DNA of 64,000 nt, from NCBI RefSeq assembly GCF_963921235.1, contig NC_086101.1, positions 16,120,001 through 16,184,000 of the forward strand, read 5' to 3'. The stretch comes from Mobula hypostoma (Eukaryota). The notes beneath the pieces were generated by a model, which worked only from the letters and a program-made list of their open reading frames with translations, was not told the origin of the DNA and ran no database searches. Positions within the stretch are counted from its first letter, which is position 1. Every line of letters starts with the position of its first letter. A program made the translations under genes and the position numbers. Below, piece by piece: positions 1-41,100 of this stretch.

Positions 1-3000
1 TCAGGCGAAGCAATAATCATCGGGGACTTGATAGTTAGGGTGACAGATAGGAGACTCTGTATCAGCAAAAGAGACACCAGGATGGTGTGTTGTTTTCCGG
101 TTGCTAGGGTCCTGGATGTCTCTGAGTGGTTGCAGAATATTCTTAAAGGGGAAGGTTAGAAACCAGAGGGCTGGTTCCATTGTACTGGTACCAATGACAT
201 AGGCGGGAGAGTGGTAGAGTTCCTGTGCAATAAGATTAAGAAGTTAGGAAGGGGGCTGAAGAGCAGGACTTCCAACGTCCTCTGGATTTCTCCCTGTGCC
301 ACGAGCTGGGGAGGGCCAGGAAGACAGTGCAGAAGAATGAATGGCTGAGGATATGGTGCAGTGAGTAGAGTTTCAAGTTCTTAGATCATTGGAATCTTTC
401 TGGGGAACCTGTACAAGTGGGATGGCCTGCATCTGAACTGGAGGGGAACCAATATCTTGGGAGGAAAGTTTGCATGTGCTGTTGGGGTGGGTTTAAACGG
501 GATTTGCAGGGGGGTGGGAACCAAAGTGAAAAGGCAGCGGATGGGGCAGTTGGTCAATAAGTCAAGACAGCTTGCAGGGTGTTTCTGCGGAAGGACAGGC
601 AGATGATAGAGCAAAGATGCACTCAGCCAGATGGTTTGAGATGTGCCTATTTTAATGGAAGGAATATCATAAATAAGGTGGATAAACTTCGGGAGTGAAT
701 TAATACATGGAACTATGACATTGTGGGCATTACAGAGACTTGGCTATCTCAGTGGCAGGAATGGCTGCTGAGAGCGTCGGGCTTTAGATGATTCAAAATG
801 AACAGGGACAGAGGCAAAAGAGGTGGGAATGCGACATTACTAATCAGAGATAGTGTCACGGCTGCAGTAAAGGAGGAAGTCTTGGAGGGATTCTCCACAC
901 AGTCAGTGTGGGGGAAGTCAGAAACAGAAAGAGGGCAATAACTCTACTGGGTGCTTTAGTAGGCCCTTCCTCAGTAGTAACAGAGACATCGCGGAGCAGA
1001 CAGGGAGGCAGATTCTGTAATGGTGCAATAATAATAATGTTGCTGTGTGGGTGATTTTAACTTTCCTAACATTGACTGGCATCTCCTTAGAGCAAGGGGT
1101 TTGGATGGGGTAGAGTTTGTTTGGTGTGTTCAGGAAGGTTTCCTGATGCAATATGTAGATGCATCAACCAGAGGAGAGGCTATACTTCATCTGGTATTGG
1201 GAAATGTACCTGGTCAGGTGTCAGATCTCTCGGTAGGAGAGTATTTTGGAGGTAATGATCACAAATCTATCTCCTTTACCATAGCACTGGAGAGGGATAG
1301 GAGCACACAATTTGGGGAAACACTGAATTGAGATGGAAACACTGAATTGAGATAAGGGGAGATATGATTCTATTAGGCAGGAGCTTGGGAGCAGATGTTT
1401 TCAGGGAAGTGCATGGCAGGAATGTGGCAAATGTTCAGGGAAAATTTGCATGGCATTCTGCATAGCTATGTTCCATTGAGGCAGGGAAAGGATGGTGGGG
1501 TTAAAGAACCATGGTGTACAAAGGAAAATTAGATAAGAAAAGAAAGGTTTACAAAAGGTTCGAGAAACAGGGTACTGTTAAAGCTCTAGAAAATTACAAG
1601 GTTGCTAGGAAGGAGCTTAAGAATGAAATTAAGAGAGCTCGAAGGAGCCATGAGAAGGCCTTAGCGAGAAGGATTAAGGAAAACCCCAAGGCATTTTACA
1701 AGTATGTGAAGAGCAGGAGGATGAGCCATGTGGGAATAGGACCAATCAGGTGCGATAGTGGAAACCTAAGCATGGAGTCGGAGGCGGAAGCAGAGGTACT
1801 TAATGAAAACTTTGCTTCAGTATTCACCAGTGGAAGAACCTTGACAATCGTAGGGATGACTTACAGCAGACTGAACTGCTTGAGCATTTAGGCATTAAGG
1901 AAGAGGATGTGTTGGAGCTTCTGTAAAGTATTAAGTTAGATAAGTCGCCGAAACCAGACGAAATATACCCCAGGCTACTGTGGACAGTAAGGAAGGAGAT
2001 TGCTGAGCCTCTGGTGATGATCTTTGCATCACTAATAGGAATGGGAGAAGCACTAGAGGATTAGAGGGTTGCAAATGTTGTTCTCCTGTTCAAGAAAGTG
2101 AGTAGAGATAACACAGGAAATTATAGACTGGTGAGTCTTACTTCAGCAGTGGGCAAGTTGTTGGAGAAGATTCCGAGAAACAGGATTTATGAGCATTTGG
2201 AGAGACAATCTGATTAGGGATAGTCAGCATGGCTTTGTCAAGGGCAGGTCATGCCTTACATGCGTGATCGAACTCTTCGTGGATGTAACAAAATACATTG
2301 ATGACGGGAGAGTAGTGGATGTACTGTATATGGATTTCAGTAAGGCATTTGATAAGGTTCCCCGTGCAAGGCTCATTCAGAAAGTAAGAAGATATGGGAT
2401 CCAAGGAGACTTTGCATTGAGGGTTGAGAATTGGCTTGCCCACAGAAGGTAAAAGCTGTAGATGGTTTGTATTCTACATGGAGGTCAATGATGTGGTGTT
2501 CTGCAGGGATCTGTTCTGGGACCCCCCCCCCCACCTTTGAGATTTTTATAAATGACCTGAATGAGTAAGTAGAAATGTGGGTTAGTAAGTTGCTGATGAC
2601 ACAAAAGTTGGAGGTGTTGTGGATAGTCTGGAGGGTTGTCAGAGATTACAGCGGGACATCGATAGGATACCGAACTGGCTGTGAAATGGCAGATGGATTT
2701 CAACCCAGATAAGTGTGAAGTGGTTCATCTTAGTAGGTTAAATTTGAAGACAGAATGTAAAATTAATGGTAAGACTCTTGGCAGTATGCTGGATCACAGA
2801 GATCCAAAGGACACTCAAAGCTGCTGCGCAGGTTGATGGTGTTGTTAAGAAGGTGTATGGTGTGATGACCTTCATCAACCGTGGGATTGAGTTCAAAAGT
2901 GTGAGGTAATGTTACAACTACAGTATATAAGACATTGGTCAGACCCCACTTGGGAGACTGTGCTCAGTTCTGGTCACCTCACTACGGGAAGTATGTGGAT

Positions 3001-18200: not shown

Positions 18201-18680
18201 ACTTACAGTTCTTGCATGACCTTTATCCTCCTCCACGTCACTATCTGCTCTAATACTCTGGTTCCCCTCCCCCTGCAAATCTAGTTTAAACCCCCCGGAG
18301 CAGCACTGGCAAGCCTTCCCTCAAGGATGTTAGTTCCCCTCCAGTTCAGGTGTAACCTGTCCTGTCAGAACAGGTCCCACCTTCCCTGGAACAAGGCCCA
18401 ATTGTCCAGAAACATGAAGCCCTCCCTCCTGCACTAACTCCTTAGCCACATATTTAGCTGCATTATCTTCCTATTTCTAGCCTCACTAGCATGTGGCACA
18501 GGTAGCAATGCTGAAACTGCAACCCTGGACGTCCTGTCCTTCAACTTTGCACCTAACTCCCTAAATTCTCTTTGCAGGACCTCCTCCTTCTTCGTATCCA
18601 CGTCATTGGTCCCTACGTGGACCACGACATCTGGCTGCTCACCCTCCCTCTTGAGAATACTGTGAACTCGATCTGAGATA
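15265..18680 (-). mobile_element. 5'-truncated CR1 LINE (3' half of ORF1, frameshifted ORF2), specific to the copy A intron
   Basis: VHVGTND esterase, YLNARSIRNK..ITETWL..MGDFN endonuclease, [16 protein letters not shown]; flanks are contiguous in copy B (about 4255-4270). Confidence 0.92.
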
Positions 18681-18948: not shown

Positions 18949-19075
18949 CTAACAATGAAAATTTAAAACCTGCAGATGCGGGAATTTTTTTTTTTTTTTA
19001 ATAGGTGCAGGAGTAGGCCATTCGGCCCTTCGAGCCTGCACCGCCATTTATTATGATCATGGCTGATCATCCAAC

Positions 19076-22000
19076 TCAGAACCCAGCCTTCCCTGCATAC
19101 CCCCTGACCCCTGTAGCCACAAGGGCCATATCTAACTTCCTTTTAAACATAGCTAATGAACTGGCCTCAACAGTTTGCTGTGGCAGAGAATTCCACAGAT
19201 TCACCACTCTCTGTGTGAAGAAGTTTTTCCTAACCTCGGTCCTAAAAGGCTTCCCCTCTATCCTCAAACTGTGACCCCTCGTTCTAGACCTCCCCAACAT
19301 CGGGAACAATCTTCCCGCATCTAGCCTGTCCAATCCCTTTAGGATCTTATACGTTTCAATCAGATCCCCCCTCAATCTTCTAAATTCCAACGAGTACAAG
19401 CCCAGTTCATCCAGTCTTTCTTCATATGAAAGACCTGCCATCCCAGGAATCAATCTGGTGAACCTTCTTTGTACTCCCTCTATGGCAAAGATGTCTTTCC
19501 TCAGATTAGGGGACCAAAACTGCACACAATACTCCAGGTGTGGTCTCACCAAGGCCTTGTACAACTGCAGTAGTACCTCCCTGCTCCTGTACTCGAATCC
19601 TCTCGCTATAAATGCCAGCATACCGTTCGCCTTTTTCACCGCCTGCTGTACCTGCATGCCCACTTTCAATGACTGGTGTATAATGACACCCAGGTCTCGT
19701 TGCACCTCCCCTTTTCCTAATCGGCCACCATTCAGATAATAATCTGTTTTCCTATTTTTGCCACCAAAGTGGATAACTTCACATTTATCCACATTAAATT
19801 GCATCTGCCATGAGTTTGCCCACTCACCCAACCTATCCAAGTCACCCTGCATCCTCTTAGCATCCTCCTCACTGCTAACACTGCCACCCAGCTTTGTGTC
19901 ATCCGCAAACTTGGAGATGCTGCATTTAATTCCCTCATCCAAGTCATTAATATATATTGTAAACAACTGGGGTCCCAGCACTGAGCCTTGCGGTACCCCA
20001 CTAGTCACCGCCTGCCATTCTGAAAAGGTCCCGTTTATTCCCACTCTTTGCTTCCTGTCTGCTAACCAATTCTCCACCCACACCAATACCTTACCCCCAA
20101 TACCGTGTGCTTTAAGTTTGCACACTAATCTCCTGTGTGGGACCTTGTCAAAAGCCTTTTGAAAATCCAAATATACCACATCCACTGGTTCTCCCCTATC
20201 CACTCTACTAGTTACATCCTCAAAAAATTCTATGAGATTCGTCAGACATGATTTTCCTTTCACAAATCCATGCTGACTTTGTCCGATCATTTCACCGCTT
20301 TCCAAATGTGCTGTTATCACATCCTTGATAACTGACTCCAGCAGTTTCCCCACCACCGACGTTAGGCTAACCGGCCTATAATTCCCCGGTTTCTCTCTCC
20401 CTCCTTTTTTAAAAAGTGGGGTTACATTAGCCACCCTCCAATCCTCAGGAACTAGTCCAGAATCTAACGAGTTTTGAAAAATTATCACTAATGCATCCAC
20501 TATTTCTTGGGCCACTTCCTTAAGCACTCTGGGATGCAGACCATCTGGCCCTGGGGATTTATCTGCCTTCAATCCCTTCAATTTACCTAACACCACTTCC
20601 CTACTAACATGTATTTCGCTCAGTTCCTCCATCTCACTGGACCCTCTGTCCCTTACTATTTCTGGAAGATTATTTATGTCCTCCTTAGTGAAGACAGAAC
20701 CAAAGTAATTATTCAATTGGTCTGCCATGTCCTTGCTCCCCATAATCAATTCACCTGTTTCTGTTTGCAGGGGACCTACATTTGTCTTTATCAGTCTTTT
20801 CCTTTTTACATATCTATAAAAGCTTTTACAGTCCGTTTTTATGTTCTCTGCCAGTTTTCTCTCATAATCTTTTTTCCCCTTCCTAATTAAGCCCTTTGTC
20901 CTCCTCTGCTGAACTCTGAATTTCTCCCAGTCCTCAGGTGAGCCACTTTCTCTGGCTAATTTGTATGCTACTTCTTTGGAATTGATACTATCCCTAATTT
21001 CTCTTGTCAGCCACGGGTGCACTACCTTCCTTGATTTATTCTTTTGCCAAACTGGGATGAACAATTGTTGTAGTTCATCCATGCAACCTTTAAATGCCTG
21101 CCATTGCATATCCACCGTCAATCCTTGAAGTGTCATTTGCCAGTCTATCTTAGCTAATTCACGTCTCATACCTTCAAAGTTACCCCTCTTTAAGTTCAGA
21201 ACCTTTGTTTCTGAATTAACTATGTCACTCTCCATCTTAATGAAGAATTCCACCATATTATGGTCACTCTTACCCAAGGGGCCTCTCACGACAAGATCGC
21301 TAATTAACCCTTCCTCATTGCTCAAAACCCAGTCCAGAATAGCCTGCTCTCTAGTCGGTTCCTCGACATGTTGGTTCAAAAAACCATCCCGCATACATTC
21401 CAAGAAATCCTCTTCCTCAGCACCTTTACCAATTTGGTTCACCCAGTCTACATGTAGATTGAAGTCACCCATTATAACTGCTGTTCCTTTATTGCACACA
21501 TTTCTAATTTCCTGTTTAATACCATCTCCGACCTCACTACTACTGTTAGGTGGCCTGTACACAACTCCCACCAGCGTCTTCTGCCCCTTAGTGTTACGCA
21601 GCTCTACCCATATCGATTCCACATCTTCCCGGCTTATGTCCTTCCTTTCTATTGCGTTAATCTCTTTTTTAACCAGCAACGCCACCCCACCTCCCCTTCC
21701 TTCATGTCTATCCCTCCTGAATATTGAATATCCCTGAACGTTGAGCTCCCATCCCTGGTCACCCTGGAGCCATGTCTCTGTGATCCCAACTATATCATAA
21801 TCATTAATAACAATCTGCACTTTCAATTCATCCACCTTATTACGAATGCTCCTTGCATTGACACATAAAGCCTTCAGGCGCTCTTTTACAACTCTCTTAG
21901 CCCTTTTTAATGCTTGCCCTGGATTTGTCGGCCTGCCACTTTTACTTTTCCCCTTTGTACTTTTTGCTTCTACGCTCACTTTACACCCCTCTGTCTCTCT

Positions 22001-22096
22001 GCACTGGTTCCCATCCCTCTGTTGTGAACTAACCTCCTCACACCTAGCCGCTTTAATTTGATTCCCACCCCCCAACCATTCTAGTTTAAAGTCACC
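19076..22096 (-). CDS. CR1 ORF2: APE endonuclease plus reverse transcriptase (about 1000 aa)
   Basis: NARSIRNK, ITETWL, GDFN, SDH; [37 protein letters not shown]. The frame is open from 22096; the first in-frame AUG is about 200 codons in. Confidence 0.96.
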   Translation of the reverse strand, partial: GDFKLEWLGGGNQIKAARCEEVSSQQRDGNQCRETEGCKVSVEAKSTKGKSKSGRPTNPGQALKRAKRVVKERLKALCVNARSIRNKVDELKVQIVINDYDIVGITETWLQGDQGWELNVQGYSIFRRDRHEGRGGGVALLVKKEINAIERKDISREDVESIWVELRNTKGQKTLVGVVYRPPNSSSEVGDGIKQEIRNVCNKGTAVIMGDFNLHVDWVNQIGKGAEEEDFLECMRDGFLNQHVEEPTREQAILDWVLSNEEGLISDLVVRGPLGKSDHNMVEFFIKMESDIVNSETKVLNLKRGNFEGMRRELAKIDWQMTLQGLTVDMQWQAFKGCMDELQQLFIPVWQKNKSRKVVHPWLTREIRDSINSKEVAYKLARESGSPEDWEKFRVQQRRTKGLIRKGKKDYERKLAENIKTDCKSFYRYVKRKRLIKTNVGPLQTETGELIMGSKDMADQLNNYFGSVFTKEDINNLPEIVRDRGSSEMEELSEIHVSREVVLGKLKGLKADKSPGPDGLHPRVLKEVAQEIVDALVIIFQNSLDSGLVPEDWRVANVTPLFKKGGREKPGNYRPVSLTSVVGKLLESVIKDVITAHLESGEMIGQSQHGFVKGKSCLTNLIEFFEDVTSRVDRGEPVDVVYLDFQKAFDKVPHRRLVCKLKAHGIGGKVLVWVENWLADRKQRVGINGTFSEWQAVTSGVPQGSVLGPQLFTIYINDLDEGIKCSISKFADDTKLGGSVSSEEDAKRMQGDLDRLGEWANSWQMQFNVDKCEVIHFGGKNRKTDYYLNGGRLGKGEVQRDLGVIIHQSLKVGMQVQQAVKKANGMLAFIARGFEYRSREVLLQLYKALVRPHLEYCVQFWSPNLRKDIFAIEGVQRRFTRLIPGMAGLSYEERLDELGLYSLEFRRLRGDLIETYKILKGLDRLDAGRLFPMLGRSRTRGHSLRIEGKPFRTEVRKNFFTQRVVNLWNSLPQQTVEASSLAMFKRKLDMALVATGVRGYAGKAGF

Positions 22097-23040
22097 TCAG
22101 TAGCCCCCGCTAATCTCCCTGCCAGGATATTGGTCCCCCTAGGATTTAAGTGTAACCCGTCCTTTTTGTACAGGTCACACCTGCGCCAAAAGAGGTCCCA
22201 ATGATCCAAAAACTTGAATCCCTGCCCCCTGCTCCAATCCCTCAGCCACGCATTTATCCTCCACCTCATCGCATTCCTACTCTCACTGTCGCGTGGCACA
22301 GGCAGTAATCCCGAGATTACTACCTTTGCGGTCCTTTTTCTCAACTCCCTTCCTAGCTCCCTATATTCTTCTTTCAGGACCTCATCCCTTTTCCTACCTA
22401 TGTCATTGGTACCTATATGTACCAGGACCTCTGGCTCTTCACCCTCCCACTTCAGGATATCTTGGACACGATCAGAAATATCCCGGACCCTGGCACCAGG
22501 GAGGCAAACTACCATCCGAGTCTCTGGACTGCGTCCACAGAATCGCCTATCTGACCCCCTTACTATCGAGTCCCCTATCACAACTGCCCTCCTCTTCCTT
22601 GCCCTACCCTTCTGAGCTACAGGGCCAGACTCTGTGCCGGAGGCAGGGCCACTGTCGCTTCCCCCGGGTAAGCTGTCCCCCCCAACAGTACTCAAACAGG
22701 AGTACCTGTTGTTAAGGGGCACAGCCGCCGGGGTACTCCCCATCACCTGCCTTTTCCCCTTCCCCCTCCTAACGGTGACCCACTTGTCTGCCTCCCGTGG
22801 CCCCGGCATGACCACCTGCCTTCCACTCCTCTCTATCACCTCCTCGCTCTCCCTGACCAGACGAAGGTCATCGAGCTGCAGCTCCAGTTCCGTAACGCGG
22901 TCCCTTAGGAGCTGCATCTCGATGCACTTGGCGCAGATGTAGACGTCCGGGAGGCTTGGAGACTCCAGGGCCTCCCACATCCGACACCGAGAACAGCAAA
23001 CTGCCCTCACAGTCATAGTGCCCCTCTCCTCAAATAGCAA
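22081..23040 (-). CDS. CR1 ORF1: Cys zinc-finger plus SGNH esterase (319 aa)
   Basis: CSRCRMWE..ICAKC, coiled coil, GDSIVRG, VHIGTND, DGLHLN. Confidence 0.93.
   Translation of the reverse strand: MLFEERGTMTVRAVCCSRCRMWEALESPSLPDVYICAKCIEMQLLRDRVTELELQLDDLRLVRESEEVIERSGRQVVMPGPREADKWVTVRRGKGKRQVMGSTPAAVPLNNRYSCLSTVGGDSLPGGSDSGPASGTESGPVAQKGRARKRRAVVIGDSIVRGSDRRFCGRSPETRMVVCLPGARVRDISDRVQDILKWEGEEPEVLVHIGTNDIGRKRDEVLKEEYRELGRELRKRTAKVVISGLLPVPRDSESRNAMRWRINAWLRDWSRGQGFKFLDHWDLFWRRCDLYKKDGLHLNPRGTNILAGRLAGATEVTLN
22084..22090 (-). other. Candidate -1 ribosomal frameshift heptamer U_UUA_AAC at the ORF1/ORF2 overlap
   Basis: ACT TTA AAC TAG ends ORF1 and ORF2 is in the -1 frame; the same heptamer occurs at 492-498(+), 18284-18290(-) and 39850-39856(-). 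Confidence 0.6.
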
Positions 23041-38164: not shown

Positions 38165-41100
38165 CAGTCCATCTAGTCTATGCCAAACCTACCTACTCCC
38201 CTTGAACTGCACTGGGACTATAGCCCTCCATATCCCTAATATCCATGCACCTATCCAAACTTCTCCTAAACATTGAAATCATTCATATGCACCATTTGTG
38301 CTGACAGCTCATTCCACACTCTCGAGACCCTCTGAGTTAAGAAATTTCCCCCCATGTTCCCCTTAAACTTCTCACCGTTCACTCTTAATCCGTGACTTCT
38401 GCTTGTAGTATCATCCAATCTCAGTGGAAAAAGCCTGCTTGCATTTATCCTATCTATATCCATCATAATTTTGTATAACTTCATCAAATCTCACAATCTT
38501 CAATGTTCTAAAGTATACAGTCCTAATCTATTCAATCTTTCCATATAACTCCCAGATCCTTGCAAGTTTTCCCTGTACTCTTTCAAACTTGTTTACATCT
38601 GTCCTGTAGGTAGGTGACCAAAACTGCACACAATACTCCAAATTAGGCCTCAGCAACGTCTGCAACAACTTCAACATAATATCCCATCTCCTGTACCTAA
38701 TACGTTGATTTATGAAGGCCAATATGACAAAAACTTGCTTAACTACCCTATTTACCTGTGTCACTACTTTCAACAAATTATGTACCTGCATTCCCAAATC
38801 TCTTTGCTCTACCATACTCCTCAGTGCCCTACCGTTCAATGTGTAAGGACTACTCTGGATGGTCCGACTGAAGTGCAAAACCTTGCAGTTGTCTGCATTA
38901 AATTCCATCTGCCTTTTATCCTGACAGGCTCATACAAGCTTTGACCTTTCAAAATTTCGTTTTGGAAGGCTTTCCACTTTCCAATTACATCTTCACCAGA
39001 AAACAACCAGTCCCAATCCACAAACTTGGCCTTTCTCCAATTTGGAATCTCAACCCGTGGACCAAACTTATCTTTTAAGATATTCACTTTGAAACTACTG
39101 GTATTGTGGTCATTGGATGCAAAGTGTTCCCAGACACAAACTTTCACCTGCCCCATCTCATTCCCTTTTAGCAGATCCAATATTGCACGGTCTGCTTGGG
39201 ACTTCTATGTACTGATGAAAGAAACTTTCCTGAACACATTTGATAAACTCTATCCCATCTAGTTCTTTTACAGTGTGGGATTCCCAGTCAATATGTGGAA
39301 GGTTAAAATTACCTACTATAACAAAGTTATTTTTCTTGCAACCGTTTGCAATCTCAACAAATTTGTTCCTCTAAATCCTGCGGACTGTTGGGTGACCTGT
39401 AATATAGTCCCATTAAACAGGACATATCCTTCTTATGTCTCAGTTCCACCCATAATACCTGACTCGTCAAGTTCTCCAGTCTGCCCTGACAGAGCACTGC
39501 CATGATATTTTCCCTGACTGGTAACAGCACCCCTCCTCCTCTAATCCCTCCCACTCTGTCACTTCTAAAACAACAAAACCCTGGAATATTGAGCTGCCAG
39601 CCCTGACCCTCCTGCAACCAAGTCTCACAAATGGCTACAAATGTCATAGTTCCAGGTATTGATCCATTCCGTGAGCTGATCCGCACTTCCTATGATACTT
39701 CTTACACTGAAGTATACGCAACCCAGGACACTAGTCACACTGTGCTCAACTTTTGATTCCTGACCTTATCTGACATCTTTCCAACTTCTGCCTCCACAAC
39801 CTCTCAACTAACTGTTATAGCACTGGGGTTCCATTCCCCTGCAACTCTAGTTTAAACCCCACCTTGCAGCATCAACAAACCTTCCCACTAGGATATTAGT
39901 CCCACACCAGTTCAGGTGCAAACCGTTTCTTCTGTACTGGTCCCACCTTCCCTGAAAGAGAGCCCAATGATCCAAAAATCTAATGCGCTCCCTCCTACAC
40001 CAACTCCTTAGCCATGCGTTAAACATACCTGTTGTTGAGGGGGATGGCCACAGGGGTACTCTGCGCCGGCTCCTTAACCCCTTCCCATCACCCATTTTCA
40101 TGTGTCCTGAACTTTGGGTGGAACTACCCCTCTAAAGGTCTTATCAATCACCCCTCCCCACAGTCTTCCGAATGATGTGAAGTTCATCCGGTTTGTGAGG
40201 GGATCCTGGAGTACCCCTATTGACTGTGCTTTTTGAGTGAGTGAGAGTGAGAGAGGAGACACACATGAAGATTAACGGTTGGACTGTCACTTTAAGGCAT
40301 TGGAAGTAACTTTGGATTTCTACTGAGTTGGGTTTGGAGACAACGCTGAGCAGCTCAAAGGTTGCTATGGTGACTGAAGGCAGATTGTTGATGTTACTTT
40401 CAAGGACTTGTTGCCTGCTTGTGCATTTCTTCACAGACAAAGGAGGGAGGGACTCTTTGAATGACAGGTGATGCTCAGCACAGAGAATTAAATAGGAGGT
40501 CAGATGATACAGACCTGAGACACATGATCTGGACACTGAATGAGCATTGTTGTGCCCCGCAGAGAAAGTGGGGTTTTGGAGGATCGATCAGGCGGATCGA
40601 TCCAAATTGCTATTACAGTGAAGGAGAAGGGGTTGACTGGTGGGGAGTTGTCTATGTGTCCAGCCTTGCCGGGGTGATAGCTCCACCACAGGAAAACCGG
40701 TCCCCCTGGTTAAAGTCACAGTCGGTGACTTATGAAGGATTTCGGAGGACGACGAGGAAATCGACAGCAGCTCACCTGAAGACTCAACTCTCTCTTTCTC
40801 TCTCTCTCCCCATCACTACTCAACTAAATACCACGAACTGAACTGAACTTCTACTCATCATCGTAAGACTGTATCTTTTTACCCCTAGACTTAAAGAAGC
40901 TTGGTTTTCATACATATATTTCCACACTTACTGATTTAGGTACATATATATATATATATATAAATCATTGCTAACCTGTGTGATTTATTTACTTTTATAT
41001 TACTGTATTGCGTAGTTACTAATAAATATTATTAGTTTATAGCAATACTGGACTCCAAAGTGATTTCTATTTCTGTTGGTTTCTTTATCCCCGTCACGGG

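Follow-up and report, generated by a model that had tools for sequence, protein, structure and literature searches.

The 64,000-nucleotide stretch analysed here (the window) comes from Mobula hypostoma (contig NC_086101.1, positions 16,120,001 to 16,184,000). Its minus strand carries an apparently intact long interspersed nuclear element (LINE) of the CR1 type, whose two open reading frames (ORFs) meet at a putative site of −1 ribosomal frameshifting (Table 1). We read ORF1 from the ATG at 23016, as against the TTG at 23040 given in the mechanical ORF list. The encoded protein matches the Pfam families PF13472 (3e-16), PF00657 and PF17182, and is 98% identical to the annotated M. hypostoma protein LOC134342314. 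The ORF2 frame has 1004 open codons after the TGA at 22099..22097 and closes at the TGA at 19078..19076; its translation reads GDFKLEWLGGGNQ... and matches PF03372 (3e-12), PF14529 and PF00078 (1e-33). An N-terminal APE endonuclease and a reverse transcriptase in ORF2, together with an esterase (SGNH) ORF1 that has a cysteine-rich finger, fit a CR1-group LINE; the CR1 label is based on the amniote relatives of ORF1 and on the call made in the initial annotation of this DNA.

Table 1. Features of the CR1 element, of its ORF1–ORF2 junction and of the decayed copies in the window (positions in the window)
Feature	Position	Strand	Basis or remark
Apparently intact CR1-type LINE	18985..23040	-	ORFs, Pfam, 3' end read; 23040 is the ORF1 start in the mechanical ORF list
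ORF1, 311 amino acids from the ATG at 23016	22081..23016	-	Cysteine-rich N-terminus and SGNH/GDSL esterase; C-terminus ...EVTLN
ORF2, −1 frame: APE endonuclease (residues 93-279) and reverse transcriptase (566-783)	19076..22096	-	Pfam
TGA of the −1 (ORF2) frame, two codons 5' of the heptamer	22097..22099	-	Sequence
Slippery heptamer U_UUA_AAC, phase ACU UUA AAC	22084..22090	-	ORF1 phase; 2.0 bits at all 7 positions, 10 junctions
ORF1 stop UAG, abutting the heptamer on its 3' side	22081..22083	-	Sequence
Sole nearby AUG, third frame, not conserved (absent from the other window copies)	22077..22079	-	Sequence, junction alignment
G-tract GGUUGGGGGGUGGG, candidate 3' stimulator	22064..22077	-	G6 run 22073-22068, begins 10 nt past the heptamer
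In-phase TTTAAAC, decayed CR1 copy, stop mutated to GGG, G-tract next, APE homology in the −1 frame	492..498	+	
In-phase TTTAAAC TAG, second decayed CR1 copy, APE homology in the −1 frame	18281..18290	-	
In-phase TTTAAAC TAG, third decayed CR1 copy, downstream ORF2 decayed out of frame	39847..39856	-	

On the minus strand, ORF1 ends GAG GTG ACT TTA AAC TAG, and the heptamer within this sequence is read in the phase that tandem −1 slippage requires, with UUA in the P site and AAC in the A site. Because the −1 frame has a TGA upstream and ORF1 has its TAG downstream, a productive shift is confined to 16 nt (22096-22081). Counted from the slip site, ORF2 has no in-frame AUG until codon 206, while the first APE motif (CVNARSIRNK) is already reached at codon 77. 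Likewise, 6 of 9 informative elements lack an AUG in the interval from the slip site to the APE motif. The initial annotation had described an ORF1 ending in ACT TTA AAC TAG, an ORF2 open in the −1 frame from 22096 with no in-frame AUG for about 200 codons, and an AUG at 22079 that is out of frame and not conserved. All of its statements about the sequence hold for this minus-strand element.

We consider programmed −1 ribosomal frameshifting, yielding an ORF1–ORF2 fusion, to be the best explanation of this arrangement, and probably the right one. Translation of the CR1 RNA would begin at the ORF1 AUG, and some of the ribosomes that have reached UUA (P site) and AAC (A site) would slip back by one base; tRNA-Leu would then pair with UUU in place of UUA, and tRNA-Asn with AAA in place of AAC. 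The slipped ribosomes would continue with CUA GAA UGG UUG GGG and make a single ORF1–endonuclease–reverse transcriptase fusion of about 1,313 amino acids (...EVTLN-LEWLGGGNQ...), with LAGATEVTLNLEWLGGGNQIK as the predicted tryptic transframe peptide. Ribosomes that do not slip would stop at the adjoining UAG and release the ORF1 protein (ORF1p), and the ratio of fusion to ORF1p would be governed by the efficiency of slippage, much as the ratio of Gag to Gag-Pol is in retroviruses. A ribosomal pause caused by the adjacent stop codon and by the G-tract, which lies 10 nt downstream, would presumably help. That slippage takes place, and with what efficiency, is inferred.

Exactly four copies in the window retain the 3' end of ORF1, as found by tblastn with both ORFs, the decayed ones having 43-55% amino acid identity to the intact copy. 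In 4/4 of them, TTTAAAC is in phase and is followed by a G-tract (492-498 on the plus strand; 18284-18290, 22084-22090 and 39850-39856 on the minus strand), which bears out the earlier observation of TTTAAAC and a G-rich block at the ORF1 end of three copies besides the intact one. The endonuclease had also been placed in the −1 frame of the first two of these copies, and there the APE homology indeed lies in that frame, at offsets of 93 nt (copy 492) and 177 nt (copy 18290), both divisible by 3. TTTAAAC as such is not enriched in the window (14 observed vs 10.2 expected); the evidence therefore lies in its place and phase, not in its number.

We collected 13 DNAs with a −1 ORF2, namely the 4 window copies and 9 fetched junctions; the fetched DNA covers 12 proteins and 13 loci. 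An in-phase X_XXY_YYZ heptamer stands directly 5' of the ORF1 stop position in 13/13 of these junctions (U_UUA_AAC in 11, G_GGA_AAC in 1 and A_AAA_AAC in 1). It is followed by TAG in 10 and by TAA in 2, never by TGA (0), and by GGG in one decayed copy. Seven of the fetched junctions (L001, L002, L004, L005, L006, L007 and L010, the last from the snake Erythrolamprus reginae) read NNT TTA AAC TAG/TAA with APE in the −1 frame; L003, identical in sequence to L002 but from a second run, was not counted separately. The 11 UUUAAAC junctions are divergent and come from rays, a frog-like source, a snake and unknown taxa. The codons ahead of TTA AAC are CTT, CAT, TAT, AAT, GCT, GAT and GCT in the fetched elements and ACT and GGT in the window copies, so that the base before UUA AAC, a third codon position, is always T while the encoded amino acid differs. 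Codon usage does not explain the heptamer, because TTA and AAC are minority codons in the intact element (16% of Leu and 33% of Asn codons, respectively) and NNT makes up only 23.5% of all codons. A heptamer-anchored alignment of ten junctions gives 2.0 bits at 7/7 heptamer positions, 1.3-1.5 bits at the stop codon and about 0.2-0.8 bits at most flanking positions.

Protein searches extend this pattern. The ORF1 query found 75 homologues from rays, skates, sawfish, sharks, Xenopus tropicalis, bichir and catfish, and nearly all of the full-length ones have an x-L-N C-terminus. A profile search over 1.84 billion cluster representatives, with local re-scoring, gave 141 homologues that reach the C-terminus, of which 90 end in xLN, 11 in xGN and 2 in xKN; its named members include the turtles Macrochelys, Chelydra and Chrysemys as well as the snake E. 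reginae.

The xGN and xKN endings belong to different heptamers at the same position. The xGN element L009 reads CAG GGA AAC TAG, that is G_GGA_AAC, and the xKN element L011 reads TCA AAA AAC TAG, that is A_AAA_AAC; in either element APE lies in the −1 frame. Three canonical heptamers thus share one place and phase, and the silent base ahead of each equals X. This covariation is the strongest argument for −1 frameshifting. Two protein-level tests, both uncorrected for phylogeny, agree with it: a residue that has no NNT codon (K, E, Q, M or W) precedes LN in 1/102 proteins of an enlarged xLN set against a background of 16% (P = 4e-7), and Q (CAG) precedes GN in 14/16 proteins and LN in 0/102 (Fisher P = 2e-16); the sampled sequences are related, so that these P values overstate their independence. 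A maximum-likelihood tree has LN-type elements on either side of the midpoint root and also a mixed clade, where elements of the GN, KN and LN types are closely related. In it P0153 (KN) has P0206 (GN) as its sister (99% support), and P0122 (FLN) falls among QGN types. As close relatives differ in heptamer type, the heptamer has been exchanged several times.

The same C-termini could suggest that ...xLN is a functional peptide of ORF1p, or that the conserved bases are an RNA or DNA signal unrelated to decoding, with ORF2 made by internal ribosome entry or from a separate transcript. The invariance of L and N in 102 proteins whose preceding residues vary fits such a peptide. However, other lineages end in GN or KN, only the AAC codon is common to all, and the constraint reaches the silent third base of the preceding codon. 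Internal entry or a separate transcript would also have to cope with an ORF2 that has no AUG before its catalytic N-terminus, and no joint or splice form at the junction was seen in the contigs, which come from DNA-like runs. We regard this explanation as highly improbable.

The anatomy and phase of the junction, its conservation and its covariation are found across vertebrate CR1 lineages. The invariant wobble T, the minority codons and the matching variant heptamers answer the initial annotation's call for conservation beyond codon constraints, and the invariant heptamer, the wobble T and the covariant variants argue for the Gag-Pol-like −1 fusion at U_UUA_AAC that it had proposed.

A further explanation is termination-reinitiation, in which ribosomes would end at the UAG and restart on ORF2 nearby, either without an AUG, as proposed for human L1, or in the manner of the UAAUG of SART1, the heptamer being kept for some other reason. 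It is the sole mechanism with experimental support in other LINEs (PMC3708506, PMC3894237), the stop codon is tightly conserved beside the heptamer, and the intact copy has a UUG 6 nt past the stop. However, reinitiation needs neither an ORF2 that opens through the heptamer nor the −1 phase seen in 13/13 junctions, and it leaves the invariant wobble T and the switches between UUUAAAC, GGGAAAC and AAAAAAC unexplained. The junction alignment shows no conserved start or near-cognate codon past the stop, the only AUG being out of frame. We therefore think termination-reinitiation unlikely, though less so than a peptide or non-decoding signal.

Besides the relatedness of the sampled proteins, several points weigh against frameshifting. 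Human L1 ORF2 is translated independently of an AUG by an unconventional, termination-linked route, according to a passage of PMC3708506 that cites Alisch 2006; because of this precedent, a missing AUG alone is no proof of frameshifting. Among the public sequencing runs that contain the stretch, none is on record as RNA, and the placed runs look like DNA. No conserved stem follows the heptamer: the consensus fold of the alignment has 0 pairs, by a method that does not cover pseudoknots. Nor are the downstream folds more stable than those of shuffled sequences, with z = +0.56 for a single 130-nt fold and z from −1.7 to +1.9, mostly positive, for thirteen 100-nt folds. On the other side, the junction has marks of a −1 site, namely an in-phase heptamer, a −1 ORF that is open through the heptamer without a start of its own, and conservation beyond the amino acids. 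The hairpin or pseudoknot expected 5-9 nt downstream of such a site was not found; the junction has a conserved G-tract instead.

We also examined variation within the family, using contigs of four public runs from related organisms placed on 21960-22220 at ≥85% likeness. In 22051-22096, which spans the G-tract, the stop, the heptamer and 6 nt upstream, there are no variants at ≥3%, compared with 31 variable sites in the other 215 nt of 21960-22220. By our own estimate, the chance of finding zero variants in the 33 nt defined a priori is about 0.015. The initial annotation had named loss of the heptamer from other young copies as grounds for abandoning its proposal; in these four related runs the heptamer is free of variants at ≥3%, and it is thus conserved in other copies. 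Loose contig ends show that other subfamilies likewise finish in ...TTTAAA. Contig depth climbs steadily towards the 3' end of the element, as expected for genomic 5'-truncated copies. Contigs in two runs connect 20716 to 22225, skipping 1508 nt and inserting 8 other letters; this join is an internally deleted CR1 variant without the junction and the 5' half of ORF2. A Hypanus gene model (P0033) that runs from ORF1 into APE was considered as evidence of slippage and set aside: it reads ...EGFKLNLQ, a genomic frameshifted copy or model.

The G-tract is a real conserved feature of the junction. Its form is G3-7, 1-3 nt, G3-4, and it sets in 8-12 nt past the heptamer. A run of at least four G is present at this site in 10/13 junctions, with 1.5-2.0 bits at +17..+21, as compared with about 0.3-0.7 bits in the remainder of the ORF2 N-terminal linker, which is variable in length. 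Most −1 sites of high efficiency have a downstream hairpin or pseudoknot. The initial annotation had suggested that the G-run acts as a G-quadruplex or stem stimulator; its conservation is borne out, but a conserved stem is not, and ViennaRNA with the G-quadruplex option predicts a quadruplex in only 4/10 junctions, and three of these quadruplexes would be two-tier. L006 alone has a canonical four-tract G3 motif, and the G4Hunter maximum ranges from 0.3 to 2.2. The quadruplex prediction does not hold for the junctions in general. The best candidate for a long-range partner of the G-tract, CCCCACCCACCC (at about 18800), gave −25.5 kcal/mol against a shuffled mean of −21.3, with one shuffle at −28; it was rejected because it lies outside the element, past the poly(A) end at 18985. 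The G-tract could be a quadruplex, a protein-binding site, its spacing being typical of trans-activated sites (PMC5009743), or simply the code for a Gly-rich linker. The 0-frame stop abutting the heptamer may add a ribosomal pause.

It comes close to an even chance that frameshifting is real while the G-tract does not stimulate it, reflecting a Gly-rich linker or base composition, so that the heptamer and stop alone would work at low efficiency. The tract is missing in L004 and weak in L009 and L006, the surrounding region is 40-48% G regardless, the consensus fold reveals no conserved structure, and very little ORF2 protein (ORF2p) suffices for a LINE, as established for L1. Such a neutral tract is harder to reconcile with the contrast in information content between +17..+21 and the rest of the linker, or with the lack of tract variants among the family copies. 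The tract-less L004 has a hairpin 6 nt past the heptamer instead. L004 (4736-4795) is the sole U_UUA_AAC junction without a G-tract; its irregular hairpin (−17.6 kcal/mol, z = −1.25) could be an alternative stimulator.

Other relatives may join their ORFs by other means. In a teleost-type clade (L008:3240-3330 and L013:1250-1522), ORF1 ends ATC or ATA TGA CTAGTAAG and the APE ORF is in the same frame; in L013 this frame is open for about 75 codons past the stop, up to the end of the contig at the first APE motif. In vertebrates, no stop context is better known for high readthrough than UGA-CUAG. Here it is a candidate for stop-codon readthrough that would substitute for the −1 site. In L012 (950-1100), from a marine metagenome, ORF1 ends CGG TTT TTT CGT TAG with APE in the +1 frame. 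An FF-x C-terminus is found in four homologues, and the U6 run of the L012 type is possibly a +1 or −2 shift site. As these differing signals would each fuse ORF2 to ORF1, we argue that the fusion is the selected product. The choice between readthrough and frameshift signals parallels the alternatives known for retroviral gag-pol. We tentatively extend this into a wider proposal, which we hold to be somewhat short of probable: a recoded ORF1–ORF2 fusion may be a general and ancient strategy of the esterase-ORF1 CR1-group LINEs, with its signal swapped repeatedly (three −1 heptamers, UGA-CUAG in the teleost type, U6/+1 in the marine type), and the G-tract may be a new non-hairpin −1 stimulator, acting as a quadruplex or as a site for a host protein or ORF1p, that would allow regulated ORF2 dosage.

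The CR1 junction resembles the gag-pol (gag-pro) junctions of retroviruses and long terminal repeat (LTR) elements and that of PEG10 (G_GGA_AAC) in having an in-phase heptamer at the end of a structural or RNA-binding ORF. As in retroviral and LTR gag-pol, a start-less enzymatic ORF follows in the −1 frame, and the fusion ratio is here proposed to be set by the efficiency of slippage. The three heptamers found here (UUUAAAC, GGGAAAC and AAAAAAC) each belong to the classical shift sites (see PMC5009743). Unlike the retroviruses, CR1 is a non-LTR, target-primed retrotransposon whose ORF1p is of the esterase type and not a Gag; its junction is without a conserved hairpin or pseudoknot and has a minimal overlap, with the stop abutting the heptamer. 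The heptamer U_UUA_AAC is identical to that of coronavirus and torovirus ORF1a/1b, and the decayed copy at 492-501 reads UUUAAACGGG. Coronaviruses rely on a pseudoknot about 5-6 nt downstream, whereas none was found at the CR1 junction, where the 0-frame stop follows immediately. A stop directly 3' of the heptamer is known from the −1 sites of luteoviruses and dianthoviruses (G_GGU_UUU UAG in BYDV), and in this the CR1 heptamer is like them. Those sites rely on an adjacent bulged hairpin and a long-range kissing interaction, whereas the best long-range complement to the CR1 G-tract falls outside the element. The arterivirus C-rich motif and the cardiovirus 2A site are protein-dependent or linear 3' stimulators 10-15 nt past the shift site (PMC5009743). 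The CR1 G-tract is like these in its unusual 10-nt spacing, its conservation and its apparent lack of structure; it differs in being G-rich, and is a stimulator candidate only. CR1 is like SART1 and human L1 in that its LINE RNA is bicistronic, its ORFs are closely spaced and little ORF2 product is needed. In SART1 and human L1, ORF1p and ORF2p are separate products and there is no slippery heptamer, whereas the CR1 anatomy predicts a covalent fusion.

The −1 frameshifting mechanism itself is classical, but its place at a LINE ORF1–ORF2 junction is apparently undescribed in the literature searched. A review of recoding has HeT-A gag as its sole non-LTR entry (PMC5009743), two papers on the biogenesis of non-LTR proteins describe ORF2 translation as unclear without a mention of frameshifting (PMC3894237, PMC3708506), and a 2026 survey of the CR1 group is silent on a slippery site (PMC13343379). 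No −1 site was found described at the ORF1–ORF2 junction of CR1 or any LINE in this literature, whose coverage excludes the older papers on chicken and turtle CR1 and on esterase/PHD ORF1.

How the second ORF of a LINE is translated from a bicistronic RNA is a long-standing open question, and if frameshifting is the answer here, it could be addressed directly with a reporter cassette of about 150 nt. ORF2p would be born covalently joined to ORF1p, giving a physical basis for co-assembly on the parent RNA and a fixed ratio of ORF1p to ORF2p. LINEs and retroviruses or LTR elements would have converged on one recoding trick, and the G-tract may represent a new type of stimulator. Such elements would be mis-called by pipelines that annotate ORF2 from an AUG, and several gene models in our collection absorb a CR1 ORF1. 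Four proteins (P0019, P0024, P0050 and P0052) are CR1 ORF1 sequences of a ray or shark that public databases list under different names. One of them, on a 4-kb contig, is recorded as an SGNH hydrolase of Pseudomonas aeruginosa and is likely a contamination; the others are a 40S ribosomal protein S24 isoform X2 of Pristis pectinata and two TMEM204 isoforms of Mobula birostris. These misfiled names are gene models that have absorbed a transposon ORF.

The 3' end of the intact element consists of a 77-nt 3' untranslated region (3'UTR) and then A15 at 18985-18999. Within this end (window 18985-19075, minus strand), the 3'UTR contains AATAAA and a GGUGCAGG...CCUGCACC stem. An A15 terminus in place of a microsatellite is unusual for an element labelled CR1. 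CR1 fragments are dense on both strands over the whole window (1-64000), where at least 12 separate stretches have homology to ORF2 and are for the most part 5'-truncated.

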